Origin: Oopsacas minuta
Lineage: Eukaryota > Animalia > Porifera
Direction: 5' to 3'
Assembly (NCBI GenBank): GCA_024704765.1
Contig: JAKMXF010000111.1
Location: 512,619-576,618 of the forward strand
Length of the DNA: 64,000 bases
Shown: positions 544 to 44,328 of the stretch, one piece after another
Layout: every line of letters starts with the position of its first letter
Numbering within the stretch: position 1 is the first letter of the stretch
Position numbers and translations under genes: made by a program
The notes under the pieces: model-generated
Told to the model about the DNA's origin: nothing
The model's input: only the letters and a program-made list of their open reading frames with translations
Databases searched by the model: none

Positions 544-765
544 TCTTTTGGTCTGATATTGATGTTTGTTATTTACTCTTTTGGTCCTGATATTGATGTT
601 TGTTATTTACTCTTTTGGTCTTGATATTGATGTTTGTTATTTACTCTTTTGGTCCTGATATTGATGTTTGTTATTTACTCTTTTGGTCTTGATATTGATG
701 TTTGTTATATACTCTTTTGGTCCTGATATTGATGTTTGTTATTTACTCTTTTGGTCTTGATATTG
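544..765. repeat. 34-bp minisatellite B (TCTTTTGGTCYTGATATTGATGTTTGTTATTTAC), about 6.5 copies
   Basis: Near-identical tandem units read directly. Confidence 0.92.
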
Positions 766-1107
766 AAGCTTGCTCTTCCTTGGTTACGATGTTACTCCTT
801 TGGTATTCTTATTGATGGGGGCATCGCGCAAAGGTCATCCACAGGTGTATTGGTGTATATATTTTGAGATTCCTTATATCTAGCTTAGCTGATTACTTAT
901 TTCTTGTCAAATAGAGAGATACATTTCTAGAATATTCCAACTTTAAATAAATAGGAGAGATTAATAACTAGGCAGTACTTCGTATCTTCTTTGTCATTCA
1001 ACTACGAGCAGCCTACTACTTCGGAGATACCATTTGCATACGTTGAAATGGAAACGGCCAATAAACCATTCATTAGCGCCTGTGAATTTGATGCCCAGGA
1101 GATGATT

Positions 1108-1898: not shown

Positions 1899-2876
1899 TC
1901 AAACGAAACGCACGTAACACTAGTTGGTATTCATCATCCATGGTCTGTACCCTCTCTTAGCCTGATCAACTATTTGAGGATTATGGAACTTGGGTGGCGG
2001 ATACTAACTAGTAACACCTTCAGTTATAGGTGGATAAGTTCGATGGGTCTTTCAGTTTATAAATGGGGGGTGGATCTGTTTGGGTAAGCCATGTATATAC
2101 AATTAACGAAGCGAGAGCCTAGGTAACTGTAATGGTGACAAGGGCAACGTATAGGTACAACAGCTAGGAAGGTGCATCCCAATTATGGGATGCATGCTCC
2201 CCTTGTCACTCTCCAATCGTATAGGCTCGCGGTTGGGGAAAGGTACGGAGTGTGTCCCAAGTGCACTCACAGCGAAATCGCTGCATCCCCTGAGGGACCA
2301 ACCGCCTAATCTAATTTACAATTCAATTTACCTCGTATCTTCGTTCTTAAATATAACTGAACTATATAACCTGATTTCTCCCCTGCATATAGTGTCTCTA
2401 TACCACCTAACACCTCTCCATTCGACGTCACAAGCCCTCTCCCCCTCCACTCACAAACAGAAGCAAGTACAATTCTCTCTCTCCCTCTCAAATACGCCTC
2501 TCCTCCAGTTGTTCAATAAGCAAGCACAGATATTTATAGATTCTAAATTTATAACTGAATGTATTCGATTATAACAATATTATGAATTATTAAATATTAT
2601 AAAGCAAAGTATCATAAATTATACACACTTAAGGGATAATTATAATTATATGGTGAACCATGGGGAAGAAGAACACCCTGGAGGACAGGGCAGTATTGGA
2701 TACTATACCCAGAATCCAGATAAATGCAATGTTGGCTTACAAATAGTGTATTCCCACTGTGGTGCCGACCTCAAAATTCAGTAATAAACTATAGCTATGA
2801 TATTTTGATGTTTACAATATACTATGGATCAAATGTACATAAATTGGTACTCACAAATATGTATACACATTTACAA

Positions 2877-4859: not shown

Positions 4860-5204
4860 TTTGTCTTTCTAATTCATTCATTTTAGTTTATATACAGAGC
4901 TAATCATGTCTATATCAGTTGTAATTTATCTTATCTGTAACTCCATTCCGTTAGTGATATTGTGATCACACACGTAGACACAATGTCATTTACTTGCATC
5001 ATCGTTTGCTGTCCTCATTATATAGTGTCCAGACATGATACTTCCATACAGATCATGTCTAGCTGTAGGGTGTGATTACATTTATACGTATTATGGGTGT
5101 ACATATCTCAAAAGGTGTTCATCCATTTGATATGATCAAATACAACCTGTCATTATTCCCATTATGTATTCCTTCTTAATAAAATTCACTCAATTAGTGT
5201 GTGC

Positions 5205-22800: not shown

Positions 22801-24354
22801 TACTATTAGTTAATGATATAGAAGTTCTTGATAAACTCAAATCTTCTAGCATTAACAAATTCCTACACGTGTTTACATCTGAAGCAATGCCTAGACCTAC
22901 TCATGCTAATATTGTATGTATAAATGTATTGATTATAAGGTGTTAGATTAATCATATTTATGTAGTTAACAATAAAAGCTTTGATGTCAAGATTAGATCC
23001 AGAAATCCCGGATAATGAAGAAGCTTCTATTAAGATATCTCTGCTACCAATGAAGCTAAATATAGATCAGGTGAGTAACTATTGACTGTCTGCTCCAAAC
23101 CCGGACACATAACTACAGTCACTTCCCATTATATCTAGCACGAATATATCAAACTACCCGCCTATATCGAAGTCTAAAATTGTACAAATATGGTCCCAAA
23201 CCGTCAAAGTAACGTAATTACACCGGTTTTATCGAAGTGATTATCACGGTCCCTTGTGCTTCGATATAACGGAAGTTGACTGTATGGTGTATGAATCTCT
23301 GAGTTAATACCTGTGGAATTGAAATACAACCCTTGGGGCAAATTTCTTAGCATTTCCTTTCCTTTCCTTTCCTTTTCTTGAGGAGTGAGACACGTAATTA
23401 TGTTCATTTAATATCAAGGATGCTCTATTGATGATAAAGGAATTCTTTACAAAAATATTAGAGACAAAACCTATATCATTTCCAGGTTAGTAAACAATTA
23501 TTTGCTTTAATATTTGTTATTATTATGTTACACTCATTAGCACCTCCCTTCCTACCTACAAGCAGTATCCCTCCTGTCTCCTCTCTCACCCCTCAGTCTC
23601 AATCTAGGCCTGTATACATCAGAAGCTTCTCTTTCTATCCTGACGTTCCTATCCGTGTAGACTATCAAGCCAAACACAGACTACACATGGACCAGGTATA
23701 TAACTCAGATATATTAAATTCCAAAGCTTTACTGCCATTCCAACAGTTGGATAGATATCTTAACGATAATGACATGTATGTGTGTTACAGTTAAGTCATT
23801 GAGTATGCTCTTGCTAGATAGCTCAATAACCTGTTGTTATTTCTATCTATTATATTAGCTATTTTGATTCTTTAGGGTACGATAACAGGATTGTTGTTAA
23901 GTCTCACTGATCTCAACTGCTCTGAGATAAAACTTAAAAAGTTAAGCAGTCGGAAGGGGTACGTAACAGCCCCCTTTCCCATGGGTCCCCTTACCCCTTG
24001 TCACCCTCCTATCTCCTCTAGGTTCTTAGGATACGATAAGCTACTGGAGTATGTAATTACAGAATGGCTAACTGATATCAAGAGCTATCAGCTACCTCGA
24101 ATTATAGGAGGAGTAGGTCCCATGTATTACATCACACAATTAGGTAGGTAATGTATTCTTGTGTTAGAGCATAACAGCTGATAGGTCAAGACATTTTGAC
24201 ACCTATCTCAGAGAGTTTTTGAGATATTACTTAGATCTTAGAACTCTTTCCTAGATTTATTGCATTCCACACACATGCCAAATTTCAATTTTCTAGCTCT
24301 TACCAGTTCCTCAATTAATTCAGGACAAAATACAAATCAAGTCTTAATATATAC

Positions 24355-24442
<88 letters not shown>

Positions 24443-26238: not shown

Positions 26239-27342
26239 ATGAGTGCAATATTGCAAAGAATCAAAGAAATAGAAGATGAAGTTAGTCGTACTCAGAGGAA
26301 TAAAAACACAGAGTATCATCTAGGACAATTGAAAGCTAAAGTCGCAAAGTTAAGGAGAGAATTGTTGGCAGAGCCGAAGTCCTCCGGCGGGGGAGGGGAT
26401 GGATTTGATGTCAGCAAGACAGGAGACGCCCGTGTAGGATTTATCGGTTTCCCGTCTGTCGGTAAATCTACCCTCCTGTCCAATCTAGCGGGAGTATACT
26501 CAGAGGTTGCTGCTTACGAATTCACAACTCTGACTACTGTCCCTGGTGTTATCCGTTACAAGGGCTCTAAAGTTCAATTATTAGATCTTCCGGGTATTAT
26601 TGAGGGGGCTAAAGATGGTAAAGGGAGAGGGAGACAGGTCATAGCTGTAGCGAGAACGTGCTCACTCATTTTTATAGTCCTGGATGTTCTTAAACCCCTG
26701 CATGACAAGAAAGTTATTGAAAGGGAATTAGAAGGATTTGGTATTCGTCTCAACAAACAACCTCCTGATATTTCTTACAGAAAGAAGAATAAAGGAGGAG
26801 TCAATCTGAGTCAAGTAGTGCCTCAATCCTATCTGGACTTAAACACAGTGAAAGCTATTCTAGCTGAGTATAAAATACATAACGCGGATATTGTATTGAA
26901 ATGTGATGCTACATCTGACGACCTGATAGATGTAGTAGAAGGTAATAGAACTTATATACCATGTATTTATCTTTTGAATAAAATAGATCAGATATCTATA
27001 CAGGAGCTGGACATAATATACAAAATACCACATGCTGTCCCTATATCCGCTCACCATAAATGGAATTTTGATGATTTACTTGAGAAAATGTGGGATTACT
27101 TAAATCTCGTTCGTATCTACACCAAACCGAAAGGACAACTCCCTGATTACGAAACTCCAGTAGTTCTGCATGCAGATGCTAGTACTGTAGAGAATTTATG
27201 TAACAAACTACACAAGGCTATTTTACGGGAGTTTAAGCATGCAGTGGTCTGGGGAACTTCTGTTAAATTCAGTCCCATGAGAGTAGGGAAGGAACACGTA
27301 CTACATGATGAAGATGTTGTCCAAATTGTGAAGAAATTGTGA
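26239..27342 (+). CDS. DRG1: Developmentally regulated GTP-binding protein 1, intronless
   Basis: [80 protein letters not shown]-terminal TGS domain. Confidence 0.97.
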
Positions 27343-28768
27343 ATTCAAATTTTAGTTCATTTACTGGAATATTTCCCCTAGAAATTGCTGAATATAATCC
27401 ACATCTTTATCGTAAAGTCCATATGCAATGATTGTGGGTATTTCTGTGTATTCCTTTTGATACGCTGGAATAATACATGTTAGGATGGATAGTGGAGAAA
27501 TTGAATTTATTTCTTAAAACTTCAAATGTAAGTTCTAGATTGTACCGAAAATTGAAATTGGACACAAACATGCGTAATAGTGAGTAGTACTGGTACCAAG
27601 GTACGATGTAGAGTATTAATTGGAACTGAAACTATGGTTACTTAACTTAAACTGGTATATAGCATTATTTTTGATTACATCAATTGTAAATCAAATATTC
27701 ACCACAAATAAACAATTATATTTTGCCTATCATATCTGACAATATTCGAATAATAATGATAATATTTCAAAATACACTCACGATTCGGTTTTATGTAAAT
27801 CTTGATAGTTGCAAGTTATCATTGCAGTAGTAGTGTTATATTTTAATTTTTATTGTCGAGATATCTTTAGCTAATTTATTGATTATTTTCCTTCATTTTT
27901 GTTTGTTGATTTATTGTCTGTAACGATAGCATAGTCTATGAATAGAATTCATTTACAGAGGAATTTTATTTGTTGACAACTAAACTAGCGGCCAATGTGG
28001 ATCTTTGGAATATAAGACTTTAACACAGCTGAAAACCCTTTTTAGATATTTTAATGGCCTCGGATGATTGAAAATATCAAATTTATTGAATTTATCGCAT
28101 AAAAATTGAGGTCACCTAATGAACCCAATATAACACGTACTTCTATGCGTGTAATTAATATACTTCTTGCTAACAAACTGAATAGAGTGCTAATTAGATT
28201 GTATTAATTTCCAAATCATATCTGGTATACTATAATTGGTAATTGAATTGTTATGTCCACATGACACCTCTTAATTAAGTTACCCTCCTCCCATTGTTAA
28301 TTAACACAAGCAGAACCATATTACCAATTAATTATATCTAATTTCAATGCTTTTCGGTGTTCTGTTCTTGCATTCTTGATGTTCAATGCCGTTGCTAACT
28401 TTTCAAATTATTCACTAAACCTAACTGCAGTTTGTATGATCTCGCAAAAATAAAATTCTTAACATTTCACCTCAGATATTTTTCTTGCCATTTTCATATA
28501 TTTTCATTGAAGAGATATTGTCCCTTTCACTAATACGACATTGAAAGCTTATTTTGTATGGTACAAACTTCGAATAAATACTTTCAATAAGCATGCGCAG
28601 TGGTTTGACTGATGAATAGAGTAGAAACGCTAGTATATATAAGGCAAATGAGTAACCCATTTTAGACAACATTAAAATTGCTGCTTGACCCTGTTTAATT
28701 GAATTTGGTAACATTCTATATACGTATTGAGGAAAATATCCATATTTCCTGAATAATAATTTTCTAAA

Positions 28769-31700
28769 ATGATGTCTCATACCAATCAGCCATTAATATC
28801 ACCACTGTATGATTCTCATCCTTACCAAACGGATCCCTCACTGATTGACCCCTCAGCTCTCAATATTTACGAAATGACAGACGCCCAGTACAACCCGATG
28901 ATGAATCGGCTCCCCCCTCACCCTGTTCTCTCCGGGGGTATGCCTGGGTATCCTCCCATGAATAGCACAGTACCTCCAGCTGATATGAGTTATACAAGGA
29001 AACACCGGTATGTTTAACAAATATTTATGAGCCTATTAAATATACAAATATTGGCTTCTGCGTTGCTCGCAATTTTATTGGTTTATTTTGACATTTTTCA
29101 TCGAAATATTTACGTAACTAACCAATTTCCAAAATTTCCAAAATTTCCAAAATTTCCAAAATTTTCAACATTTTTACGTAAAATAATAATTATACATTCC
29201 AATTACCCAATTTTACACCTCAACAGCTCTAATTTATTGTTACAGTAAAAATAATAATTTTTATACTCAATAACCGCCTCGATAGACATGACAGTCTGTC
29301 TAACGGACTAGATGATCCAAGCCCAGATGATGAATCGAGTTCTAAGCGTTACCGCTTGTCAGACGACAACACAGAATCACTGAGTACACCCCCTAACAAG
29401 TCCACAGGCCCCAGTGACCGTGTGGGAGCAAATGGAGACGGTAACAATACGATAAAAACTAAAAAGACAAAAGGCCGTGTTAAAATTAGTATGGAGTATA
29501 TTCCAAATAAACTGAGACGTTATACTACATTCAGTAAACGGAAATCTGGAATTATGAAAAAGGTAAAAACTATATTTCATTCGAATGCGGATACTAATCG
29601 TATCTATCCAGTGAATACGTAGGAGCTCTTGAATGTAAGGTGCTCTGCCGTAAGCATTACTCTATGTAGTTACAGAGATAATAGTTGAACGTTAATCTTA
29701 ACTACAAAAGTTTTGTTGAATATGATCCATTAGTAAGAGAGTACATTTATTAAATGCAGTCTAACTCGGATAAGACGTACTATCAGAGTGTATGTCTTAT
29801 CCGAGTTCTACTGTACCTTAATACGTCGGTTTATATGTGAATTTGAGTTTTAATTAAATCAGAATGTTTACAAGAATTTCTTAATATGAATTAAACCTCA
29901 GAGGAATTTATTAATTTATATTCTTTGTAAATAAACTGAATGACCACCGGGAAAACCTTACACAAATCATAAACTGCCTACGATGGAAGGGAATGTATTG
30001 AGTGCTTTACGTACCAGCTAATTATACAGCCAATATTAGTAATTCATTTGATTCATGTCAATTATTGATTATTCTCTCTCACGCAGGCGTTTGAACTTAG
30101 TACTCTTACTGGTACTCAGGTAATGCTATTGGTTGCATCAGAAACGGGACATGTGTATACATTCGCTACACCAAAGCTACAACCAATGATTACATCAGAG
30201 AGAGGCAAAGCACTGATACAGACCTGTTTAAATAGCCCAGACCCGAGTGCTAATCCAGTCCTGTCCGACGCCTCGCAGCGAATGAACGTACAAGGATTCG
30301 AAGAGATGGATCTGAACTACCCAGTCAACAGTTTGGAAGAGCTTAAGGTATTTGTTTCATAATGATAAGTAATGACAAACAGTTCTATCAAGTACGTATT
30401 AAATACAATACTGCTTCGTTAGAACAATACTGCATCTGTTGAGCTATCATAATTGCATACTATTATATTAATTCAGTAGACTCTACGTTTAATTCATAGG
30501 GTCACATCGGGGCCAGGCCAATTTGGCCTGGTTTAAGCAGAATAAATGTGGTGGCTCATTAACTGGAGTAATGTAGCACTATTCATATGATTCTGTTTCT
30601 GTTAAGTGACCCGATTAAACGATGGTTCTATTAAGTGGAGTCTACAGTATTATAAAGCAAATTCAGTCAGTGAATTGGTTGCTGTATTGCTAACACGTAA
30701 TGGTGAGAAACCACAAAGATTCCAAGTTATATATATTCTAACCAGCTGTGGGGCCTTGTGCAAAATACTGAAAGTATACAGAGATATCTTGTCTAAGCTA
30801 TTCGAACAGATATATTTTAGCGGTGAATTGTGAAAGTGAAACTTATTTGTGCATTAGACATTAATAATTTGACTCAAACATTTGGTTATTAGTTCTTATT
30901 ATTCGAAATATTTTAAATATTCTTTGAATACAAATTTATTTGTTTATTGAAGCGGTTGCATTCTTCTATTGTTTGTAGCAACAACGCACATTTATTTACA
31001 AAGACTGAGTTCTTATGAGTGTTTGTTGTTATTTAAAGAATCTAGTTTGTAATATTTAAGCGAGTTTGGTGGAATTTAATTAGTTCCAATTTTTTAAATT
31101 CTTGAATAATTCTGCTTATTTTAATTAAATCACTTCTTGGATTAGTTTCAATTCCATATAAGGTAATCTAAGCGAATTCCGAGCAGTCTTTTGTAAATTC
31201 TGTCACATGTCCTTATATGGTAATATCTACTGCCATATATGATATCTATAGTTACAGTTTCATATATACATGTACTATATATTGGAAGTTTATTAATGAT
31301 ATCTTTTAGCACTTCTTTATATACGATTCTACTCAGTTAATGTAATGTTTAGCTGAATCCTTGTAAAATAGCCCCCTGCTATATACTGGCAGTAGGGCAG
31401 TCTATGATCATAGTCATCGTGGCTTCTCATATCCCCCTATTATTTGAATATTCTTGCATCTGTTACGGTCAGGTTTCTCTCATGATCTCTCACATTGATT
31501 TGATTAAGTAGCAGTTATATCTATTTTTGTTATCCATCTCTTTCAATTGAATGATTTTAGTGTCGAGGTATCACAATGTTTTGAATTAAAGAACTTAATG
31601 ACCTTTCTGGGCACTCTCTTTACTGAAGCCAGAGTACTTAAGCAGCCATTCTATTAACATGCTTGTTTCCCGTACAAACCTACACCAAATTTTATCTAAG

Positions 31701-33785
31701 TACTGCAATGGCACAGAGCTTTTGTTCACTTATCAGACAGTTAGAAGTAGATTTGCATTAGAATATTCTAGGACATGCGATTTAAATTTTTAAAGTTTCT
31801 CTACAAAGCAATAATTATTCCTTTCAAGTTAATACATATCTTATTTTCACACTATTCGTGTATATTCACATTATTCGCATTCCATTGATACCTTCGGCTG
31901 TTAGAACCCGATAAGACAATTTGTCTAAGAGTTAGAAATCATGTTGAATGAGATGTACACAGAAATATTTTTACTTTCAGATTTCAGCTATCTTAGCTGT
32001 CTGTCCCTTTTATTGTCACGGCCTATTAAACCGTAAATAGTGGCAGGCCAAAGGGGACTGGGTCTGCCAGATCCTGGGACCGCCCCTGACCGTAAATTTG
32101 CTAGTAACAAATTTTTTCCTCAGATCACTTAATTAATTCGTACTAGTCCCTCCTTTCTTCCACATTATTGTAAAACACAACCTCCACCTGTAGCTTATGA
32201 TTACTATCCTGCACTAGTATCAAATATCTATCATCTTGTTTAAATAAGCAATCTCAAATTACTAAAGTATCCTGTTAGGACACTAATTATTAGACAAAAT
32301 TCAAATCTACACATTTTTAACGAATATTCGGTAACATATACACTACAAGGACCCTGTCATACCATGTGGTGCAAGGTCAATTGATATATTCTTGCTATTT
32401 TATTGTTACGGTTTAAGATCGATAGCGCGATTATTCTTTCTAATAACCAGCTGATCGTGGTACCCACATATTTTAAATTCAATATTACTAATACAAACAG
32501 CACTAAATTATTTTTATTTTTTCAGTTTGTCTCTGCTTGGTTAGATAGTATTTTGATAAAAATAGTAAAAATGTTAGTACTCGTAAAATATAGGTTTTAA
32601 ATCTATGATATAGTGAGGTGTCGATTTATTCAATTAATTCTTCATCCACAATTCTAATTTGTAATATTTTCTACGCGTTTATTAAATATCAGTTTTTATA
32701 TTAATGGATATGTATCTAGGATATCAAATTATTCAGTGACTCAGGAATGTCTTTTCCAGCTCTGTCACAGCTTAGCGGATTAATCCCGAATTCTTCACAT
32801 CAAAACCTCAATGTATTGCCATCGCATATCCAGGTATTGTTTATTGTCGTTGTGATTATCAAATTTATTGCGGTTCATAAGCCAACGTTATTCACCAGCA
32901 CAATTACCACTTCTTGAATAATGTAATATTTTTATATTATTCATAGATGCCATTATTGGGAACACATCCAGCCCTCCAAACGTCTACGATGGCATATATC
33001 CCTCAACATCCTGAAATAATTCCTCCCTCTTCTCTTAATGTGTCTCCCTCCTCGCCTAGTCACTCTCCAAGGTTTGTTATACATTAATAGTAATTGAGTT
33101 AGTTACACAAAATACCTCACACAACTTTGGGAATTGCTTTATGAATAATTGTCGCAGTTAACCAAATCAGCTTGCGATCATTCATAATAATCTGGTGTGA
33201 GATATATATAACCAGCTGTGTTCTATAGATCTAGTCCAATACACCCACGCAGTCAGAACGTAAACAACCTACTAGTTGGAAGCAGACACAAATCATCTTC
33301 ACGTACTCCTTCCCCCCATACCATGTCCCCCTCTCAGTCAATGCTAGCATCCCCCGTAAGTTCAATTATATATACACAAATACGTAATTAGTTCTGTTTC
33401 AATTTGAAACACATTTAGTCAATTCTAACAGTCACGAATGACTCATATGATTTCTAAAATGACTTTATTCCAATTTTAGCTTACTGACTTCCCTCGATTA
33501 CCTCTCCCGTCTGCACAAACTTACCATCCTACCATGATGCTAGATGCCAATAGCCCTGTCCTCACGTCACCCTTGCTCGCTCCGGAGAGACATTTTATTA
33601 ACCGCAGTCCTAATACCACATCTCCTCAGCAGAGAGTATCCCCGTCAGTTCCCCAGATGAGACCTAATTACAATCCATCAATTGACCTCAGACAAATGCC
33701 TCCTAATCCTAACATCAATATTAGTCCTTATCAAACTCCTACGGGTAGTCCCCCAGATGATAATCTGCTAACACAACCTATTTAA
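28769..33785 (+). CDS. SRF: Serum response factor (type I MADS-box), six coding exons
   Basis: Phase-consistent exons 28769-29007, 29286-29562 (TKGRVKISMEYIPNKLRRYTTFSKRKSGIMKK), 30087-30347 (AFELSTLTGTQVMLLVASETGHVYTFATPKLQPMITSERGKALIQTCLNSPD), 32947-33071, 33229-33355, 33480-33785. Confidence 0.92.
29122..29165. repeat. 9-bp tandem repeat (TTTCCAAAA) x about 4.5 in SRF intron 1
   Basis: Direct reading. Confidence 0.8.
29757..29813. mobile_element. Short hairpin MITE with CAGT...ACTG termini in SRF intron 2
   Basis: CAGTCTAACTCGGATAAGAC ... GTCTTATCCGAGTTCTACTG-TA. Confidence 0.6.
31154..31242. promoter_or_regulatory. CArG-box cluster (candidate SRF-binding enhancer) in SRF intron 3
   Basis: CCATATAAGG (31154-31163), its exact reverse complement CCTTATATGG (31211-31220), and one-mismatch CCATATATGA (31233-31242); SRF consensus is CC(A/T)6GG. 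Confidence 0.6.
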
Positions 33786-34465
33786 ATATGTAAGTTACTA
33801 TTTGTATATATTTATTCGTAGTGCAGTTCCTGTAAGGAGATGTACTTCCGTACGCCGTGTCCTGAAAAGACTCCTTTATTGACATGAAATTGGAACCTAC
33901 TTGGTGAATTGTTAGGTGTATAATTCTTCTAATGTTGGAGAATTTGATTCTGACATTTGCCATCTTTAAACATGAATATTTATGATATATTATTGACACT
34001 TTTTCAGCTGGGATTTTATTACTTCCTCTACCTCGTTATAGGTGCGAATTAACATGACAACATCTAACGAATTCTCTCTACATACAATGTGCTGCTGACA
34101 ACAATTCAAAGAGTTACCCTCTCGACCCCTAAAGGCCCTCTACTTAGCATGTTTTTTATTTAATTCTATATATTATCTGTAGTTTTGTTTTGTTTAATGC
34201 TTGTGTTCGTGTTGATTCGTTTCACGTTTTGACATTACAATTCTGTAAATATAGTTTGATTATTATTTTGATGTTAATTACTGATTCATTTTCTAGAATA
34301 CATTGGATATATGATTCCGTTTATTCTATGTTATCAACTGAGTTATAGAACATGGATAGATGCTATGGGGATATATTGAGAAATGGATTAGACTGGAATA
34401 TACAGTAGAACTCGGCAGGTGTTATTGATACTCTACTATGTATAACCGGAGACGAGTACTTTGTA

Positions 34466-34632
34466 CAGTCAACTCCCATTATATAGAACACGGAAATAAC
34501 GGAATACCCGCTTATATCGCAGTCTGAGATTGTATAAATATTGTCCCAAAATGTTAAATTTACATATGTTCCATTGGTTATATCTATGAATCGTTACTGT
34601 CTCTTGAACTTCGTTATAACCTGAGTTGATTG
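34466..34632. mobile_element. MITE family A copy (167 bp), TA TSD, ending 20 bp upstream of the MRTO4 ATG
   Basis: TA-CAGTCAACTCCCATTATATAG ... CGTTATAACCTGAGTTGATTG-TA; colinear with 23116-23282. Confidence 0.8.
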
Positions 34633-34651
34633 TATTTTATATCATAGCTAA

Positions 34652-35410
34652 ATGCCAAAATCAAAGCGTAACAAACCATACTCCCTAACTATACCAAAGA
34701 AGAAAGGTTTAGAATTAAAGACGAAGTTGTTACAAGATGTACGTAACTGTATTGACAAGCACGAGTATGTGTATGTATTTTCTGTTCGTGACATGCGTAA
34801 CAGTAAACTGAAAGACGTTCGTACACTTTGGGAAAGTAGTAGATTCTTTTTTGGTAAAAATAAAGTTATGGCTATTGCTCTTGGCTTAACACCAGAAACT
34901 GAGTACAGAGAAGGGCTCCATAAAGTGTCCGCACAGCTCAAGGGTGATGTTGGACTATTCTTTACATCAGAACCACCTGATAAGATCCATAAATGGTTCA
35001 ATGGTTACCAAGAATGTGACTATGCCCGTGCTGGTAATAAAGCTACTCACAATGTCACACTGCCACAAGGACCCCTGTCTCAATTCCAACACACGATGGA
35101 GCCCCAATTAAGACTTCTGGGTATGCCTACTGCCATGGATAAAGGGGTAGTTACCTTAATCACTGAGTTTGAAGTCTGTAAGCAAGATGCAGTACTAAAT
35201 CCTGAACAATGTCAGATCCTAAAACTACTAGCTATACCTATGGCGATATTCCGTATTTCTCTATTGTGTTATTGGCAGAAAGAGGATAGTAGTTTTACTC
35301 AACTGTGCGCATTAGAACAAGAAGCTACAGTATTGACAGCTTCTGATGAGGAAAGCGAGCCAAATTCACAGGATGTAGAGCCGGGGAGTCCTGATAGATC
35401 TGTTGATTAG
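34652..35410 (+). CDS. MRTO4: mRNA turnover protein 4 homolog (60S biogenesis, uL10-like), intronless
   Basis: MPKSKRNK, MRNSKLKDVR, RFFFGKNKVMAIALG, YARAGNKAT, FQHTMEPQLRLLGMPT. Confidence 0.95.
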   Translation: MPKSKRNKPYSLTIPKKKGLELKTKLLQDVRNCIDKHEYVYVFSVRDMRNSKLKDVRTLWESSRFFFGKNKVMAIALGLTPETEYREGLHKVSAQLKGDVGLFFTSEPPDKIHKWFNGYQECDYARAGNKATHNVTLPQGPLSQFQHTMEPQLRLLGMPTAMDKGVVTLITEFEVCKQDAVLNPEQCQILKLLAIPMAIFRISLLCYWQKEDSSFTQLCALEQEATVLTASDEESEPNSQDVEPGSPDRSVD

Positions 35411-35610
35411 TTATAGAGGAATAGCTTATGTGTAAATTGTATTGTTATTTTCATACAGTTTATGAATGCTAATTCGTTTCTTAATATTCTTATTTGACAT
35501 AACAATATAAGCCCGAATAGATATTTGAAATAATTACCCAAATGTACATATGATTGATCGAACATTCACAAATCTCTTAACTATCTCTACTTATACGTTA
35601 TGTGACACAA

Positions 35611-37617
35611 TCACATAACTTGTAGTACTCTATGATTCTGATTATTGAACACCTGCTTAAATCCAGGAGGAGTAGAGAAGGTAACCAGCTCACAGAAGGC
35701 CACTTCTTCTTGAAAATTTTCATTCTCTAAGGCCAATGCGTCCGCTAGTTTGCACCCCTCTCTCGTTTCTTTATTACAGAACCCATCTTCCACGACTATG
35801 TAGTCTATCCCTATACCTTTCATTGTGTTGTACACGTGTGTAGGGCTTACTCTAGCAAATATGTGATACACTAACCTTGTCCGTTCTCTGATATCTTTAT
35901 TCTCATAGTGTGGATGGTTAGCAATAGGACGACCTGTTGATAGCTTGATATTGGCCATAGTAGACATGCTACCAGCAAACACAGCACGTTCTAATGTATT
36001 GTCTCTTATCCATAGGATCAGTTCTTCCATATTTGGATTATTATACTCCCCGTATACTCGAAGTTGTCTATATATGTTATATCCTCCTGTTAGTGATGAT
36101 ATTAGCAAGAATACCATTAGCAGTCTGTCCCGATTTTTACGAGTTAAAGTATTAGCAAACGGGCATGCGGGCAGGAGAGATACAAGCAAGCACATGGTTG
36201 GTGTGAAAAATAGTTTGAGTCTCATTATCAATATAGCTAGTACTGAGAATGCTATAGTCTGTAAGGCTATGTAGTATCTAGGAGCTTGATCAGCTGATCT
36301 GTTATCCACACAGCTGTTTAGTTTGAATGTATTGAGATATTCTCGTGTCAAATCAAACAACACGAACACACAAGCTGGTAATAGCAAAGTGAGACATACC
36401 TTACCTACATACACCCACCCTATGAAGTCAAACTCAGCTGCACATGTATATAACTGCGTGTCAAAATCCTTATAGTCTGTGAACTTTGATCTGAGTATAT
36501 TGAATATGTGATTATCGTCCTGTATACCTGACAAGCGTGATACTACAAACTTAAGCAGGAGAGTACCTGTTCCGACTATTGACACCTGTATGGTCCACCT
36601 TAGAAGATTGTTTGTGATTATACGGAGATATGAATGTATCGCTGTTACAGCTAAACAAACTAATAAACAAGGAAATAACAATGAAGAGAACAGCATTGAG
36701 TTAAAGAACTGTAACACGTAGTTTATAGCTAGTGCTGTGATTTGACATATAATTATAGCTTGATATCTATAATGTGATAAATACCCCAGTAAATAAATAG
36801 CCAGGAGAGATAGTAATTGTGTGAAGAGTGCGAATTGAGCAAACTGCCATGGAATCATGAAGCAAGTAGTTGATAGAGTAACAGCTGTAAAATGTTTCCA
36901 AGTAAAAGAGGTTGATTTTAGAGAATTCACTAGCACTAGAATTTGTACAAATAGGAAGGGGAAAGAGAAACTCTCCCTTAGAGGGGGTGTCCACATAATT
37001 CTCGTGGACTCTCCGTGATTATACATAAACTGAATTATTGAAAGACTTCCTCCCCACATGCTCCCACTCAAACTCCAACCCACATAGAACAAGAGTCCAC
37101 CTAGAAGCCCGTTAAGTGCGAATATACAGGTCACATAGAAATTGTGTATGTCTCCTACACCCACACATGACTCAACTACTGGCTGGTTGTACCCACGGTT
37201 TATTTTGTAACAAGTTCTAGGAAGACTATGACGTATAACTCGGAAGATAACTCCTAATATTACTTCAGGATACAAGTTGAATCTCTGTAGAGTATTTATA
37301 GTGGATGGATACTCGGTACTGTTATCATTAAGTAATTCATTTATCCCTTCTGACAAGCTAGGAGCTTCTGCTACTGTTTTGTAGTACGAGTAGTAAAGAC
37401 CCATTTCTGTCCGGAAAGCAAGCTCCCTCTCTAGAGTGGACAGGTGTGAAAAGAATAAATCATTCTCGAATAAACCAGATATATAGCAATAGTATAAAAC
37501 TCCTATACCAACTGCTATCGATAATGGTTTCCAATTTGCATAATGTTCCTCTACTTCTGTCACTCTCCTCGACCTGTTGGGATTATTCCTTTGCTTCTTA
37601 TTTGCTCGATCTTTCAT
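35611..37617 (-). CDS. DPY19L1: DPY19-like C-mannosyltransferase (multi-pass ER membrane protein); a short upstream exon (37887-37780) may extend the N-terminus
   Basis: FSHLSTLERELAFRTEMGLYYSYYKT, INTLQRFNLYPEV, WTPPLRESFSFPF, DFDTQLYTCAAEFDF, RLKLFFTP, FAGSMSTMANIKLSTGRPIANHPHYE; paralog assignment approximate. Confidence 0.9.
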   Translation of the reverse strand: MKDRANKKQRNNPNRSRRVTEVEEHYANWKPLSIAVGIGVLYYCYISGLFENDLFFSHLSTLERELAFRTEMGLYYSYYKTVAEAPSLSEGINELLNDNSTEYPSTINTLQRFNLYPEVILGVIFRVIRHSLPRTCYKINRGYNQPVVESCVGVGDIHNFYVTCIFALNGLLGGLLFYVGWSLSGSMWGGSLSIIQFMYNHGESTRIMWTPPLRESFSFPFLFVQILVLVNSLKSTSFTWKHFTAVTLSTTCFMIPWQFAQFALFTQLLSLLAIYLLGYLSHYRYQAIIICQITALAINYVLQFFNSMLFSSLLFPCLLVCLAVTAIHSYLRIITNNLLRWTIQVSIVGTGTLLLKFVVSRLSGIQDDNHIFNILRSKFTDYKDFDTQLYTCAAEFDFIGWVYVGKVCLTLLLPACVFVLFDLTREYLNTFKLNSCVDNRSADQAPRYYIALQTIAFSVLAILIMRLKLFFTPTMCLLVSLLPACPFANTLTRKNRDRLLMVFLLISSLTGGYNIYRQLRVYGEYNNPNMEELILWIRDNTLERAVFAGSMSTMANIKLSTGRPIANHPHYENKDIRERTRLVYHIFARVSPTHVYNTMKGIGIDYIVVEDGFCNKETREGCKLADALALENENFQEEVAFCELVTFSTPPGFKQVFNNQNHRVLQVM

Positions 37618-39001
37618 TTTCTTTAACTTGTTGAGCTACTTGAATCAGCAGTACAGATACATAGCTGGCTTATGGTTGATCTTGATTCAGTAATTATTAG
37701 TGCAGCAGCCACTATACAGCAGCCATCAGTAGCTTCCTACATTAGCTTTGTAGTCATCCATCCTAATTGAGTTATTTACTTGTTTATCATAGGAACTGGA
37801 CCCTTCAGAGACTTGTTTTCGGATAGACGAGGATGCTGCATATTCCAGGGTTGACGTGGGAATGGAATGGGAATTTGGTTTGTACATACGTCACAAAAAT
37901 ACTCCAATAACTTTCACTTTTAACATATAAACCTATGACTAATAATAATCTAATTAAAGAACATCTCCTCTCTCCATTTGATGTATAACCCCTCCCTGAA
38001 TAAAGTCACTCTTCTCTAAATAGCAAACTACAATACCAAATGTTTTAATTATTAATTCACATTACCTTGCAGTTCCTTCGGTGAATGTACTAAGTCACAA
38101 GCTATCCAGAACTATTGTATTAATTGTATCTTTGGCTATTGGAGGTTCTGAATCTCTACCTGGTATAACTTGTGATCCTCTACTGCTTGCTATAAAAGTA
38201 TTACATTTACCCCTGGGAATTATAGGTTAGTTTACCATTTGGTTAAATCTGGAGCTCACAACTTGGGGTCCATGTATCCTTGGCGGGCCACAGACGACAG
38301 CAGGGGGTCCACAGGTGAAAAAGGTTGTGACCACTGGGTTAATCAATGCTAAATTTCGGATCATTTGTTCAGAAACAGAACCATATATTAGTGTAAATTA
38401 AATACGATTATTCGGTTAAGCCAACACCGTGACACTATTAATTAAGCAGAGTCTACTGTAGCTGTATATATAACATGCTATGCTATGCTATGCTATAACA
38501 TCAGGAAACACTCCCCCGATTCCACGAACTATTCAGAATTTGAATAACTATTTGCAATTGTTATACCGTCAGAACATTGCTCAGTTTCCAATTCTCAATT
38601 ATTTACTCATGCATTTTAGAAATGTGGTTTTTGTATACAAATTTGCATTTTCAAAATCACCACGCATAGCAAATATTTACGGATTCCATTGCAAACAATT
38701 GGTCTATTTATACCTGCATCTTCTCAACTAATGTATATATTCACTTTAGGTGTCAATTACTGATATTAAATGTGATTAAATTCCCTTTCACTTGTTATAT
38801 TCCACTCGATCTTTGATCTGTTCAGGGAAATCCATTCATCTGTCACTGTTTATCAGGGACTTCATTGCCCCAGCTGTCCTATTTGATATTTCAACTGTTA
38901 GGGTTCCTTGCATTTCAACACAAGCATTATGTACATAAGAGTAACAATAACTTGTTACTTACACAAATATATTTAGACAAATATAGCTGTATTCAGCTAA
39001 A

Positions 39002-41377
39002 ATGGCACTAACTTTCGAAGAAGCGTGCAGGATATTAGAGGTTACCCCGGATGCCTCCGAAGCTGACGTCAAGACGGCCTATCGTAAATTGGCTATGAAA
39101 TGGCATCCAGATAAACACGAAGGCCCTGAGAAAGAGAACGCGACACAGAGGTTCCAGGAAGTCTCCGCGGCCTACCAGAAGCTGACAACAGCTGAGGAGG
39201 ATTCGATAGAGATTGGAGATTTCCAAGACGCTTTCCAGTTCTTTATGAGAATATTCATGGCGCATTGTCAGGACGAATGTTTCTTTGATGATGACTTAGA
39301 GTATGATGATGAGTTGCCTTACACTTCAGAGGAGTATTACAATACTTCTGAGTACTCGGATGAAGATGGCCCGCTAGACTATCAGTACGCTAGGGACGAG
39401 AAGCCTCCAGGGTTCGCGCGGACAGCTGAAGAGGCATTGAAAAATGCTGAAGAACTTATTCGGCAGGAAGCCGAACAGAAACGGCGATTAGAAAAGAAAA
39501 AGACAGACGGACAACGGAAACGAAAAAATAATCGAAAAAGGAAACGATTGAATAAAATAAAAACAACTATAGAAGACAAATTTATTATCGAGAAAAATAA
39601 AAAAGAGGAAAAACCACCTCTTACGCCACCTCAACCACCTAAACAGCCCCTGGGAAATGGAGAGCAGAAACAAAATTCCAACTCTAACCCTTCTCCAAAT
39701 CAGAAAACTAAGACTCCTAACGGTAAATTACATTCTCTCCCTCCTAAACAAGCTAAGCAATCAACAAAGAAATCTAATTCCGTATCTAAGCCTGATCCTC
39801 CTACCAATAAACAAACAGCTAATACAAACAAACAAACAAGGAACAATAAAGAAGTAAACAAACGTAACACAATCCATGAGGATAATTCTAATAAAGATTC
39901 TAATAATCATTCAGCATTCGTAGTAGTATCTCGTAAAAAGAAGAAAGCAGCTAGTACCAGTGTTATCAATTCTAATGGGTCTATTCCTCAGGGTAACACC
40001 TCTCATAAGGTTCATATGAATGGGACCTCTCAGTCCAAGCCTGTACCTTCTACTAATGTACATCCTGTCTGTAAGCCGACGGAGCCTTCTCACCTTGTCG
40101 CTTCCTCTAGTCCCCCTCATCAACCACCTCCTGTACATTCTAAGTCACAGACTAAGGAGACAATCCCTCCGACCAGCACCTCACCTGATCTCCCTGCCCC
40201 CTCCCGTCAGGAACCTCCACCCCTTAACAAACCCTCTCTCACCTTCAATCAAGACCTCCCTCAGAGAAACGATCTCCCCCAGCAGCAGTTCAATCCTATC
40301 TTTAATCCGATGCCTTCCCCTTACGTAGAGCCATACGCTGAAGAGCGTCCGCATATGACTAACACAGCTCACGTGGATGAAGCTATCCATCTAGCCGAGC
40401 AGGGAAATGAGTTAGCTAGTCACGAACAATTCCCTATAGCTATTGAAAAGTTCACCAGTGCTATATTCTATAACCCCAAAGAGTACCGTTACTATGGCAA
40501 CAGGTCTCTATGTTATGAGAGATTGGGAGATTTTGAGATAGCACTAGCTGATGCGGATAAAGCTATAGAACTGAGACCTGACTGGCCGAAGGGATATTTC
40601 CGGCGTGCTCGAGCTCTCAGGAGTCTCAAACGATTCTCCGAGGCAGAAGAATCCTTGTCTATTGTCCAATCTCTGCAGGGGGTAAGTGAGGACCTAGAGT
40701 GTGAGGTTAAACTTGTCAGAGCCTTACAGCTCCAGGAGTTCGGCTTCACAGCTAGTCAATCTCATAAAGCTATGAAGCTATGCACTACATACCAACAAGC
40801 TATTGACCTGTTAATACACGGTCAGATTTCAGATTCAGAGGATGATAATGTGTATCAATCGGATGATGAAGGCAATGGTTATAAGAGAATGTTTGAGAAT
40901 CCCTCCTGGTCAATGGCTAATCATTATCAACCTTTCCATTCCCAGGGAGCACATGCCCTCTCTAAGCATCATAGTACCTCCTCCGCACAACCGGGACGCC
41001 AGGTCGGGATTAACGAGGAGCCAGGGACAGTAGCCTCCCTTTGGGTGGGCAACATAGACGTACACATGACAGAGAAGGAACTGTCAGACTTATTCTCAGG
41101 AATAGGCAGAATTCAGTCAGTTTATTTCCTCCCTAAAATACAAGGTAAGAACAGGGCAGCGTTTGTTAACTTCACACAAGCAGATGACGCTGCTAATGCG
41201 ATTAATTCTCTACAAGGAGTTGAGAAGTACGGGAAATGTCTCCTCCTCAGATACCCGGACAATCCTAAACCTCCTGAGAGTCTCCCCGGGGGTAAGGTCA
41301 CCTGCAAGTTCTGGCTTCAAGGGAGATGTGTCCGAGGCAATAAATGCGCATTCGTTCACCCCCGGAAATCAAAATGA
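39002..41377 (+). CDS. Multidomain protein: DnaJ J-domain, acidic/basic/Pro-rich linker, 3 TPRs, UBA-like segment, RRM and CCCH zinc finger (TTC31-like C-terminal half)
   Basis: AYRKLAMKWHPDK (HPD); AEQGNEL...YYGNRSLCY...DADKAIELRPDWPKGYFRRARAL (TPR); SLWVGNI and AAFVNF (RNP2/RNP1); CKFWLQGRCVRGNKCAFVH (C-x7-C-x5-C-x3-H). Confidence 0.85.
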   Translation: MALTFEEACRILEVTPDASEADVKTAYRKLAMKWHPDKHEGPEKENATQRFQEVSAAYQKLTTAEEDSIEIGDFQDAFQFFMRIFMAHCQDECFFDDDLEYDDELPYTSEEYYNTSEYSDEDGPLDYQYARDEKPPGFARTAEEALKNAEELIRQEAEQKRRLEKKKTDGQRKRKNNRKRKRLNKIKTTIEDKFIIEKNKKEEKPPLTPPQPPKQPLGNGEQKQNSNSNPSPNQKTKTPNGKLHSLPPKQAKQSTKKSNSVSKPDPPTNKQTANTNKQTRNNKEVNKRNTIHEDNSNKDSNNHSAFVVVSRKKKKAASTSVINSNGSIPQGNTSHKVHMNGTSQSKPVPSTNVHPVCKPTEPSHLVASSSPPHQPPPVHSKSQTKETIPPTSTSPDLPAPSRQEPPPLNKPSLTFNQDLPQRNDLPQQQFNPIFNPMPSPYVEPYAEERPHMTNTAHVDEAIHLAEQGNELASHEQFPIAIEKFTSAIFYNPKEYRYYGNRSLCYERLGDFEIALADADKAIELRPDWPKGYFRRARALRSLKRFSEAEESLSIVQSLQGVSEDLECEVKLVRALQLQEFGFTASQSHKAMKLCTTYQQAIDLLIHGQISDSEDDNVYQSDDEGNGYKRMFENPSWSMANHYQPFHSQGAHALSKHHSTSSAQPGRQVGINEEPGTVASLWVGNIDVHMTEKELSDLFSGIGRIQSVYFLPKIQGKNRAAFVNFTQADDAANAINSLQGVEKYGKCLLLRYPDNPKPPESLPGGKVTCKFWLQGRCVRGNKCAFVHPRKSK

Positions 41378-42240
41378 TTCCTCAGTAGAGCTCTGCTGTT
41401 TTAATTTTAAACAATTTTAATAATATTAAGTAATTCTCAATATTGTCCTTTGAGACTTCTACTTTAATTAAAATTGCCATAGAATATCACTTTCGTAGTT
41501 TATTGATATTTGTTCGTATATTAAGTATGATTATTTTGATGTATTTACCCTATTTTAATATTATGACTAATTATGTAAGTTTTGAAACCATTTATTGAAT
41601 TTACAACTTTGGAGATTATTTCTGATTTTTTAGTTTTCACATTTGTGATAAAGCCTTGGATTTGATTTATCGGGTTTTAAAATATGTAATTATTTGAAAA
41701 ACATTCTATTGTCCTCAGATCTCGTGAGTTTCTTGTTTGTTTATGGGTCTCTATTTTGAATTAATTTCTTCATTATTGTTTAATTATACCCTCAATACCA
41801 TATATGGTCATTAAACTGTTATAACATCTGAAAGGAAGAATGCTAATGGCCCAGGGCTGAGAGGGTCTAAGCAATATATATATATATTGCTATTATCCCA
41901 GACACCTCTAAAGTGTGTACAACGCTCAAGTCCAGCTCCCATCTGAATAATCCTAGATCTGCCCCCTGCTAGTATTCCCATAGCCAAGTTTTCCCGGTTA
42001 AAATTCCAGTGGTGTTCGCCTATTAGCATGTTTCTTCAACGACTTAGAGTCTACTGTATTTAGAATTGTATATTCAGTAAAAGCTTCGATGGAGATCAAA
42101 TTCTCCCTGAAAGGGTGTCCACAGTTCCCCTAATATAATAATCTGATATATCTAAAATAACTGCAACTTGATCCATTCACTATATTAATATATACCTATC
42201 CTGGTAGTTACCTAATCAAACAAATACCCAAGCTGTAGTC

Positions 42241-44328
42241 ATGGCAGGTATTGATGTAGAGAAGCTACTCAAACATCTAAAAAAGGCATTGGATTTCCTT
42301 CAAAAAATTCCAACTTTGGCAAGTCCTCTCCATGAATGGAGCAGGAAGGAACTCATTGAGCTGTTAACCAAGGATATGGTAGACTTTGAGATGGTTGTAA
42401 AGGCTCCTATGTCTCACCTTAATGAAGGGGGGCCAGATGCTGAGCTGGTGGATAACCCCGGGTCAGCGAAAAGAGGGTTGAGACGTAGTCCTTCCAAGGC
42501 TTTCAATTTCAACAAGAGACTGTTCAAAGGTGAGCTTACGATTGAGATAGGACAGAACGGTGAGGTTATCATTAAACAAGGAGGCGGTAACACAGAAGGA
42601 ACGGGTAAGGACAAATCCCAGAAACCTCCGGAACCTGAACCTGAGGTTGATTTTGGAGAGGATGATGATCTCTATGATGATACGGCGACAGTACCGGAGG
42701 AACAGGAAAAACAGCCCGTGGTGGAGAAACCCAAGAACATTGGAGCTAAATTCGGATCATTTTTGAAGTCTAAAGCTAAAGTTCTATCTCCACTTCCTGA
42801 TCGTAAGAGAGCTGTTCACTCAGGGAAACTGTTAGTGAAGATTGGAATTCTGAATAAACTGACTACAAAGCACTGTGCTATTAAACAGGCACATCTATAC
42901 TACGGGAGTGCTGAGAACACACCATCTGAGGGTAAGATCCGTCTACAGGGCTCTAGTATAACAGAATTGGAAGGAAAGGATACGTATTCATTTGAGCTGA
43001 CTAGCTTGGACGGTGATAACTATATGTTATCTGCAGAGACCGCTGAAGACCGTGAGACTTGGATTAAACAGCTGAAAGATGCCAGGGATAATTCAGGTAA
43101 GGACAGATCAGATTCAGATTCTAAATTTATGTCCAGTCTAGAGAAATCTTCATCTGCTCCTGCTAAAGGGAAGGGGGTGTCTGCTCGTAGGATATCTGTA
43201 CCTGAACCTGAGCCTATTATAGAGGAACCAATACTGGAACCTGAACCGGAACCGGAACCTGAACCTGAACCTGAACCTGAATCATTCGACCAATCAGTAT
43301 CTGCGTTAGGTAACGCCCTGGAAGATGCTCTAGCTGACGAGGGAGAGGGCATCTGTGAGAAGAGAGGATGGTTGAAGCGAGTAGGGAACCTGTCTTCTCA
43401 TAAGGTATGGGTTGTTGTGTCAGGCCCCCAACTGACTATCTACCGAGACGAGAAGGAGCAGGACGTAAAGGAGGAATACTCAATCTATGGAGCTAGAATA
43501 TCAACAAAAGGCCCCAATATCAAGATAACCATGACTGATATCAAGAAGGGAGTAGCTCTATCTCCCATTTACAAATCAACTCTTCCGGATGCTAAATGGT
43601 TACAAGTATTCGCTAAAGCTATACAAGCAGAGGAGGACATATATGAAGAGTACATATCCCCAGAAACCTTGGTGACTGATCCATCTAGCAAGAAGGGAAT
43701 TGGTACTTCTTTCAGACAGACTATGAAAGTAGGATTCAGTATGTTCTCCCGGTCAGAGGAGGTACAAGGTAATCCCACTTATGCCGGGACCCTATGGTAC
43801 CAGGAACCAAAGGCCGCCCGGTATACACAGAACTATTTCACAGTTGTGGGGGACTTCTTGGTGCACTATCAGTCTAAAGGAGACACACAGGTCCTAGGAC
43901 GTATAAACCTCTCTAAATGTTATGGTATGTGGTTAGGCCCGTACGGAGCAATGAAGAATGTTATATGTTTATCACATGACGGAAAGAAAATCCATTATTT
44001 CTCTATATTATACCTGGATGATGTAGAAGATTGGTTGGAGGCTTTAGGTAAGAAGTTAGTCGATTCAACTTGGTGTACGCATTATGATGACGTCACTAAC
44101 CAAGAGGTAGCCCCTGGAGTAAGTGTTAAGCAGGTATATCAAGCTATATACTCACACAAAGCAGATACACCCCATGAGCTAGCTCTCGATCAGGGTGACT
44201 TAGTACATGTTAAAGAGTTCAGTGGTAATGCTTGGTTATGTGAGAAACTTGATAAAGCCATGAGACAGAGTGGTAAGGCTGGTTACGTCACAGGGTCTTA
44301 TCTAGCTGCTGCATATGCTGCTTATTGA
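42241..44328 (+). CDS. SKAP-like adaptor: N-terminal helical dimerisation-like segment, three PH domains and a C-terminal SH3 domain; intronless
   Basis: PH ends AEDRETWIKQL, AKWLQVFAKAI, DVEDWLEAL; SH3 YQAIYSHKADTPHELALDQGD...GYVTGSYL; acidic tyrosine motifs EDDDLYDD and EEDIYEEY. Confidence 0.75.
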   Translation: MAGIDVEKLLKHLKKALDFLQKIPTLASPLHEWSRKELIELLTKDMVDFEMVVKAPMSHLNEGGPDAELVDNPGSAKRGLRRSPSKAFNFNKRLFKGELTIEIGQNGEVIIKQGGGNTEGTGKDKSQKPPEPEPEVDFGEDDDLYDDTATVPEEQEKQPVVEKPKNIGAKFGSFLKSKAKVLSPLPDRKRAVHSGKLLVKIGILNKLTTKHCAIKQAHLYYGSAENTPSEGKIRLQGSSITELEGKDTYSFELTSLDGDNYMLSAETAEDRETWIKQLKDARDNSGKDRSDSDSKFMSSLEKSSSAPAKGKGVSARRISVPEPEPIIEEPILEPEPEPEPEPEPEPESFDQSVSALGNALEDALADEGEGICEKRGWLKRVGNLSSHKVWVVVSGPQLTIYRDEKEQDVKEEYSIYGARISTKGPNIKITMTDIKKGVALSPIYKSTLPDAKWLQVFAKAIQAEEDIYEEYISPETLVTDPSSKKGIGTSFRQTMKVGFSMFSRSEEVQGNPTYAGTLWYQEPKAARYTQNYFTVVGDFLVHYQSKGDTQVLGRINLSKCYGMWLGPYGAMKNVICLSHDGKKIHYFSILYLDDVEDWLEALGKKLVDSTWCTHYDDVTNQEVAPGVSVKQVYQAIYSHKADTPHELALDQGDLVHVKEFSGNAWLCEKLDKAMRQSGKAGYVTGSYLAAAYAAY

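Follow-up and report, generated by a model that had tools for sequence, protein, structure and literature searches.

The stretch of DNA analysed here (the window; 64,000 nucleotides, C111:512619-576618) is from the glass sponge Oopsacas minuta (Hexactinellida), whose published genome comprises 365 scaffolds of ~61 Mb, with 36% G+C and a mean intron length of 341 bp (PMC10280926). The assembly searched in this work has 61,460,524 bases in 365 contigs. Listing of open reading frames and frame analysis of the window reveal a seven-exon SRF gene on the + strand (Table 1). An earlier examination of the window from its letters alone (the sequence-only reading) had noticed a set of CArG boxes and placed them inside this gene. 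The assignment is borne out: the exon at ~29.5 kb (exon B) matches the Pfam SRF-TF domain, and both MADS exons are ~90% identical to the human SRF core in exon-by-exon protein searches (PDB 1SRS, 1HBX, 1K6O). In the same structures, human SRF crystallised on CArG DNA has a MADS DNA-binding helix nearly identical to that of the sponge protein. These searches were run with one exon at a time, the exons being left unjoined rather than assembled into a spliced protein.

Table 1. Features of the SRF locus (positions within the window) and consensus-grade CArG pairs at other loci of the O. minuta genome (positions relative to the gene named).
Feature	Position	Strand	Basis and remarks
SRF coding exon A	28769..29010	+	ORF; 3' boundary approximate; 57-70% amino-acid identity in all relatives
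SRF coding exon B, N-terminal half of MADS box	29272..29562	+	Pfam SRF-TF; aligns to 1HBX/1SRS; 5' boundary approximate
SRF coding exon C, C-terminal half of MADS box and adjoining conserved region	30087..30347	+	1K6O and 1HBX matches, E ~1e-26
SRF host intron between coding exons C and D	30348..32719	+	2,372 bp, GT..AG, phase 0; splice sites read
Partner CArG box CCATATAAGG	31154..31163		Exact reverse complement of main box, 57 bp upstream
Main CArG box CCTTATATGG	31211..31220		Conserved core of element; perfect CCW6GG at homologous site in 7/7 species
One-mismatch box CCATATATGA	31233..31242		No CArG-like sequence aligned to it in other species
Second footprint TTGGAAGTTTA	31282..31292		~70 bp downstream of main box; 8/25 invariant columns, alignment A3
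Conserved non-coding region, many short islands (candidate enhancer body)	31150..31952		~800 bp; alignments
SRF coding exon D	32720..32833	+	Splice sites read; 64-95% identical in relatives
SRF C-terminal exons E, F, G	~32947-33080, 33212-33370, 33480-33785 (span 32947..33785)	+	ORF segments, kept in all relatives; internal boundaries approximate
Consensus-grade pair, actin	132-186 bp upstream of best-scoring actin gene		
Consensus-grade pair, cofilin/ADF	~300 bp upstream of each of two divergently duplicated cofilin/ADF genes		
Consensus-grade pair, CAP/Srv2	~170-230 bp upstream of CAP/Srv2		
Consensus-grade pairs, uninformative loci	Dynein heavy-chain intron; 3' flank of TMEM131-like gene; coding tandem repeat		

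The boxes lie in the intron between coding exons C and D, 806-873 bp downstream of the end of the MADS exons. This is the longest intron of the gene, with a G+C content of 34%, and it is about seven times the mean length for the genome (PMC10280926). The sequence-only reading had called it intron 3 and given its length as 2.6 kb; the number is reasonable for the intron that follows the third coding exon, but the length is that in Table 1. The first two boxes, with a 47-bp gap between them, fit CC(A/T)6GG exactly, and the third, at 31233, departs from it at one position. All three sequences, as well as the inverted arrangement of the first two and their distance of 57 bp start to start, are as that reading had given them.

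Perfect CArG boxes are common in this genome: there are 5,359 instances of CCW6GG in 61.46 Mb, i.e. 5.6 per 64 kb or one per 11.5 kb, and 4,715 instances of the reversed control motif. The window has 12 such boxes against 5.48 +/- 2.19 in dinucleotide-preserving shuffles; both the shuffle mean and the genomic rate agree with the 4-5 chance occurrences per 64 kb estimated in the sequence-only reading. Close pairs of CArG boxes (gap <=90 bp) number 56 across the genome versus 68 for the reversed-pattern control. Given this lack of overall enrichment, the presence of a pair is by itself weak evidence of function. Such pairs are nevertheless rare enough genome-wide that the chance of finding one is ~0.002 for the host intron and ~0.005 for the 5-kb SRF gene. 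Membership of a repeat family, which had been raised as something that would count against the boxes, is not seen: the 301-bp region around them (31050-31350) is single-copy, its sole match in the 61.46-Mb assembly being itself.

A word search with the MADS exon recovered 880 SRF homologues, including some from close relatives, on long contigs. A vertebrate-like hit (P0040) and a primate hit (P0099) were left out of the comparison, and none of the contigs was treated as human. SRF loci in synteny were taken from six other assemblies; with that of O. minuta they represent seven species in four deep lineages, as defined by pooled 4-fold degenerate sites of DRG1 and Dpy19: O. minuta; L008 (the same as L027), L012 and L029; L013 and L031; and L015. 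Between these lineages the identity at the 4-fold degenerate sites of the two genes is 0.30-0.39, compared to a random expectation of 0.26, i.e. neutral sequence is close to saturation. All the lineages have in common the gene order DRG1-like, SRF, MRTO4-like, Dpy19 and DnaJ/TPR/RRM, and in all the relatives SRF has the same seven exons, with an intron between C and D that is likewise long (2.07-3.86 kb).

In every species a perfect CArG box is found 527-864 bp into the C-D intron. It has the sequence CCATATATGG in L008, L027, L012, L029, L030, L013 and L014, CCTTTTATGG in L015, and the sequence of the O. minuta main box, CCTTATATGG, in L031. In alignments A1 and A3 the boxes of the relatives occupy the same column block as the O. 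minuta box at 31211, with CC.T.TATGG invariant and only A/T exchanges at the other positions; within 190 bp of the seven-species alignment A3, 25 columns are invariant, and eight of them belong to the box. Four of the loci (L027, L029, L030 and L031) were fetched after the prediction had been made and constitute an out-of-sample test: all four possess the predicted perfect box. As a control for composition, 16 motifs of the form SS-W6-SS were compared: CCW6GG alone is present in the +500..+900 zone of 7/7 species and 4/4 lineages, and the next-best motif reaches two species of a single lineage. Altogether, 18.6 kb of these introns contain 13 CArG boxes, ~8 times the genome rate. Two other approaches were set aside: a global MAFFT alignment of the whole intron from five species was too noisy, with 7% identical columns and no window above threshold, and in an alignment-free 12-mer footprint A/T-rich words prevailed, with the CArG word unexceptional when positional information is disregarded.

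A site equivalent to the partner box is discernible 57-61 bp upstream of the main box in all species and is perfect in O. minuta only: it has one mismatch in L013/L014 (at -59; CCTTATAAAG) and in L015 (at -61; CTTTTTATGG), and two mismatches in L008, L012, L029 and L031 (at -58 to -60). As no counterpart of the third box was found in the aligned intron of any other species, this box is probably outside the functional element. Most of the relatives have a further site, CArG or CArG-like, ~182-187 bp upstream of exon D (-218 in L015). Those of L008, L012 and L029 are perfect, and those of L013, L031 and L015 depart from the consensus at one position; O. minuta lacks a CArG-like site at this position. 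It is a reasonable inference, no more, that sites have turned over within the intron, with O. minuta strengthening the proximal partner. In the 5' flank of O. minuta SRF (27343-28768) there is no perfect CArG box, and its three one-mismatch boxes are unconserved. Across the SRF loci compared there is likewise no promoter CArG upstream of exon A common to the lineages, which, as the autoregulatory sites of vertebrates lie there, counts against the autoregulatory reading.

This phylogenetic footprint indicates that the box at 31211 is under purifying selection and that the one at 31154 is partly conserved. The sequence-only reading had offered conservation in the SRF introns of related species as a check on an identical inverted pair; what is conserved is the main box, perfect in 7/7 species, but not the identical perfect pair, which is confined to O. 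minuta, nor the box at 31233. The element is hence best described as one deeply conserved CArG box with a weaker partner that is consensus-grade only in O. minuta.

It might be argued that the boxes are merely two A/T-rich 10-mers without function in an A/T-rich intron of a genome that has ~5,400 such sequences, and that close pairs are not enriched in this genome, the upstream member is perfect in one species and the third box is unconserved. Against this stand the low probability of a pair in the host intron and the presence of the main box, in perfect form and at a homologous place, in all seven species, as opposed to the 15 control motifs. As an account of the element chance is very improbable: it is strongly disfavoured for the box at 31211, and has a fair claim only on the extra perfection of the box at 31154 and on the box at 31233.

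The boxes mark the 5' margin of a non-coding region that is conserved. Local alignment of the complete intron gives its best matches at 31499-31952 of the O. minuta sequence, with scores of 56-92 against L008, L012 and L013 compared to ~17 for shuffles, and alignment A1 displays colinear islands that begin at the CArG box. The box is one among several islands, conservation in this region is strongest 300-700 bp away from it, and indels between species are frequent across the block. The GGAAGT core of the second footprint resembles an ETS site, and we infer a possible site of this kind there; the GGAA core is lost in L015. Further conserved islands include TGAAGCCA near 31624 and GCATTCCATT near 31876, the latter with a CATTCC that may be a TEAD/MCAT-like site. 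The overall architecture of the region looks like that of an enhancer.

An intronic block conserved over ~800 bp could alternatively exert its effect as RNA, either through a structured non-coding RNA or by regulating the splicing of the long intron. A search of the region against Rfam returned no family at E up to 1, and its RNAalifold consensus fold has an energy of only -2.5 kcal/mol with 6 pairs and neither compensatory change nor covariation. Further, the block is more than 800 bp from either splice site, and it tolerates the frequent interspecies indels noted above. We consider an RNA-level role most unlikely.

We defined a consensus-grade pair as two CCWTATAWGG boxes with a gap <=90 bp. 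Only seven loci in the genome have such pairs, the SRF intron being one of them. Of the six others, three are 5' flanks of genes for actin, cofilin/ADF and CAP, and the remaining three are uninformative (Table 1). Boxes recur at the actin genes: counted from the coding start, three of the four best actin genes have a box at -186 to -191, and in two of these there is also one at -141 or -129, giving five boxes in 12 x 600 bp against 0.63 expected (P ~5e-4). The pairs at the actin, cofilin/ADF and CAP flanks make a consensus CArG pair a good predictor of a canonical SRF-type target in this genome. Pairs at C38:1493 and C133:723098 have a similar spacer; the genes near them are one without annotation and an Arp5-like member of the actin family.

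The actin, cofilin/ADF and CAP loci also bear on a different interpretation of the conserved box: namely, that it is a core-promoter element of the TATA type, or a site for a factor other than SRF, in an intronic promoter (internal or alternative) or antisense transcript. The A/T core does resemble TATA variants on one strand or the other (TATATGG, TATAAGG, ATAAAAGG), and the long conserved block that the box borders could hold a transcription start and a first exon. However, the flanking CC and GG are invariant in 7/7 species, a symmetry that is needed by a MADS dimer and not by TBP, and the same CCW6GG pairs mark the 5' flanks of the actin, cofilin and CAP genes. An internal promoter is disfavoured by the lack of any conserved ORF in the region (from the ORF listing) and of a clear conserved splice donor after the box; moreover, a promoter-proximal CArG box would still be compatible with control by SRF. 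We regard this interpretation as unlikely.

A related question is which gene such an element would serve. A genuine SRF-bound enhancer in this intron might act on one of the neighbours, i.e. the DRG1-like, MRTO4-like, Dpy19 or DnaJ/TPR/RRM gene, with SRF as a bystander host. The retention of the order DRG1-SRF-MRTO4-Dpy19-DnaJ despite saturated neutral sites could be caused by regulatory constraints that these genes share. On the other hand, the neighbours are intronless genes of the housekeeping type, and CArG enrichment is also seen at distant invertebrate SRF loci without the glass-sponge synteny. Self-regulation, moreover, is documented for mammalian SRF, where it operates through the MKL and TCF cofactors (PMC4023608), and in the demosponge Ephydatia the activation of MRTF raises SRF mRNA (logFC 1.18; PMC9287330). 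The latter study never mentions CArG and includes no cis-element analysis (PMC9287330); the SRF-intron finding complements it. A neighbouring gene is an improbable target, and SRF itself would be the recipient of the regulation.

Taking these observations together, we consider it likely that the box at 31211 with its weaker partner is an intronic element bound by SRF, through which SRF would feed back on its own transcription. At the level of sequence this supports the candidate autoregulatory enhancer of the sequence-only reading. In the mechanism we propose the main box would be the binding site of an SRF dimer, aided in O. minuta by the consensus-grade partner, and this site would be part of an ~800-bp enhancer residing in the gene for SRF. 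Once activated, probably by a cofactor of the MRTF type, SRF would occupy this site in its own intron and thereby modulate the transcription of its gene. The feedback would most likely be positive, as in vertebrates, and would run alongside a CArG-marked set of actin-cytoskeleton genes (actin, cofilin/ADF and CAP). SRF and a MEF2-like gene are the only MADS genes of the genome. Two loci, on C302 and C319, have an RPEL repeat and, 1-2 kb further along the same strand, a SAP domain; these are candidates for the MRTF-like cofactor. A further RPEL cluster, on C33, was rejected as an MRTF: its C-terminal tail is Phactr-like, presumably corresponding to the Phactr PP1-binding motif.

Several known systems provide points of comparison. 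The vertebrate SRF promoter has paired CArG boxes through which the gene is autoregulated (Belaguli et al., 1997 and Spencer & Misra, as cited in PMC4023608). Like these, the candidate sponge element has SRF's own motif in the SRF locus at more than one site, and a feedback dependent on MRTF/TCF is to be expected; unlike them, the sponge sites are intronic, and a single one is perfect across species. Relative to the known vertebrate autoregulatory CArG boxes the novelty of the candidate element is this intronic, rather than promoter-proximal, placement. Intronic CArG enhancers are found in vertebrate SRF targets, such as the first-intron CArG of smooth-muscle alpha-actin. In those, as in the sponge, a conserved CArG box is embedded in a larger intronic block a few hundred bp to kilobases from the exons, but in the sponge the host gene is that of SRF, and the animal, a syncytial glass sponge, has no muscle. 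In SRF ChIP-seq, ~32% of the peaks are in introns (PMC4023608).

The comparison with promoters runs along similar lines. Paired CArG boxes in actin promoters are classic SRF targets. The same class of motif is shared by the O. minuta actin genes and the SRF intron; the actin sites are, however, promoter-proximal with a spacing of 45-59 bp, in contrast to the intronic SRF element. A serum response element of the c-fos type couples a CArG box to an adjacent Ets/TCF site. The sponge element is comparable in having a consensus CArG core and a conserved GGAAGT-containing footprint ~70 bp away; it differs in that no Ets core abuts the box and in the loss of the GGAA in one lineage.

The MRTF-SRF actin-sensing circuit is central to bilaterian muscle and cell motility. 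It is possible that binding of SRF to its own gene and a CArG-marked actin, cofilin and CAP set date from the ancestor that sponges share with other animals, and that MRTF-SRF feedback thus predates muscle; we advance this tentatively, with somewhat less than even confidence. To our knowledge, it is rare for a cis-regulatory element to be traced between deeply diverged animals, and in sponges this almost never succeeds. A pair of named factor and site, SRF on its own intron, offers a handle on whether MRTF-SRF actin sensing had feedback before there were muscles. If the proposal is right, the feedback circuit has persisted over a very long period, even in the syncytial, non-contractile glass sponges, and few animal cis-regulatory sites for a named factor could be traced back further than the intronic element. 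At four more distant invertebrate SRF loci there are 5, 5, 3 and 10 boxes per 20 kb, compared to ~1.4 expected; in one of these loci (L024) a CArG pair follows the second MADS exon at a distance of 295-336 bp, and another (L026) has three CArG pairs with a spacing of 18-19 bp.

The long SRF intron lies within a gene series (window 26239-41377) comprised of genes for a DRG1-like GTPase, SRF, an MRTO4-like protein, Dpy19 (minus strand) and a DnaJ/TPR/RRM/zf-CCCH protein. This order is common to all seven species (the window and the relatives' loci L008-L015, L027-L031) and is retained despite near-saturated 4-fold sites; in several of the seven an ATG2-like gene is found upstream. The strongest conservation within the SRF intron falls at 31499-31952: this block is non-coding, and neither an Rfam match nor a conserved fold was recovered from it. 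Among its conserved islands (see table), GCATTCCATT appears from its sequence to be TEAD/MCAT-like. In the relatives, another CArG or CArG-like site is observed ~182-187 bp 5' of SRF exon D (at -218 in L015), with one mismatch in L013, L031 and L015. The window's species lacks this exon-D-proximal site, an absence that suggests a turnover of CArG binding sites inside the SRF intron.

Beyond the SRF locus, CArG boxes are found near several genes of the O. minuta assembly (G000): the actin genes: all but one of the four best possess a box 186-191 bp 5' of the coding start, with a second at -141 or -129 in two of these three. The cofilin/ADF genes: locus L005 (G000:C166:266300-276299) features two divergent genes on a perfect inverted duplication, each preceded at ~300 bp by two or three clustered consensus boxes. 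The CAP/Srv2 gene, which codes for the cyclase-associated actin-binding protein: a consensus pair, CCATATATGG and CCTTATATGG, is situated ~170-230 bp upstream. In the same assembly, two loci combine an RPEL repeat with a SAP domain 1-2 kb downstream of it, and are candidate MRTF/myocardin-family genes. A further RPEL cluster at C33:218523-221414 was rejected as an MRTF, being Phactr-like in appearance instead.

Coordinates of CArG sites, conserved intronic islands and candidate genes
Feature	Position	Strand	Source
Actin-linked CArG boxes	C297:355198-355252		G000
Box-bearing actin gene	C22:582350-583468	minus	G000
Actin-linked CArG boxes	C88:540676-540744		G000
Cofilin/ADF CArG clusters	4942-5084 and 6290-6366		L005
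CAP/Srv2 CArG pair	4977-5044		L044 (G000:C356:24400-34399)
RPEL + SAP locus	C302:415342-416401		G000
RPEL + SAP locus	C319:107523-109588	minus	G000
CArG site 5' of exon D	12170		L008
CArG site 5' of exon D	12126		L012
CArG site 5' of exon D	12337		L029
Conserved island TGAAGCCA	~31624		SRF intron block
Conserved island TTGACA.GCTTGTTTCC	~31655		SRF intron block
Conserved island GCATTCCATT	~31876		SRF intron block
Conserved island TTGCTAGAAC			SRF intron block

A more distant invertebrate SRF locus, L026 (ERZ21781341 ctg56649l), contains 10 CArG boxes over 20 kb. Among them are three pairs with 18-19 bp spacing: one 5' of the first MADS exon, one within the MADS-splitting intron and one downstream. 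In L028 (ERZ26869290 ctg218350, 5.2 kb), the SRF MADS exon occurs twice in inverted orientation (570-878, plus strand; 2636-2944, minus strand); a foldback read or an artefact of the assembly is the probable cause.

In G000, two actin paralogues that are tandem duplicates are each followed, ~70 bp downstream, by the same tight CArG pair (C321:1040901-1040924 and 1058811-1058834), in which CCAAATTTGG precedes CCAAAAATGG with 4 bases between them. A similar GC-rich spacer is common to the G000 pairs at C38:1493-1532 and C133:723098-723139, which may therefore belong to one small repeat family; the C133 pair is situated ~240 bp 5' of an Arp5-like actin-family gene.

Within the window, the palindromic consensus box CCATATATGG occurs at 41798-41807, 443 bp 5' of a 695-aa gene (42241-44328) with PH and SH3-like domains. 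The SRF exon A-B intron has a 9-bp tandem repeat, AATTTCCAA, in ~5 copies (29124-29173). Upstream of the DRG1-like gene is a long trinucleotide microsatellite (~24350-24440), one frame of which is poly-isoleucine; the cofilin-locus ORFs of L005 display a similar poly-Ile run.
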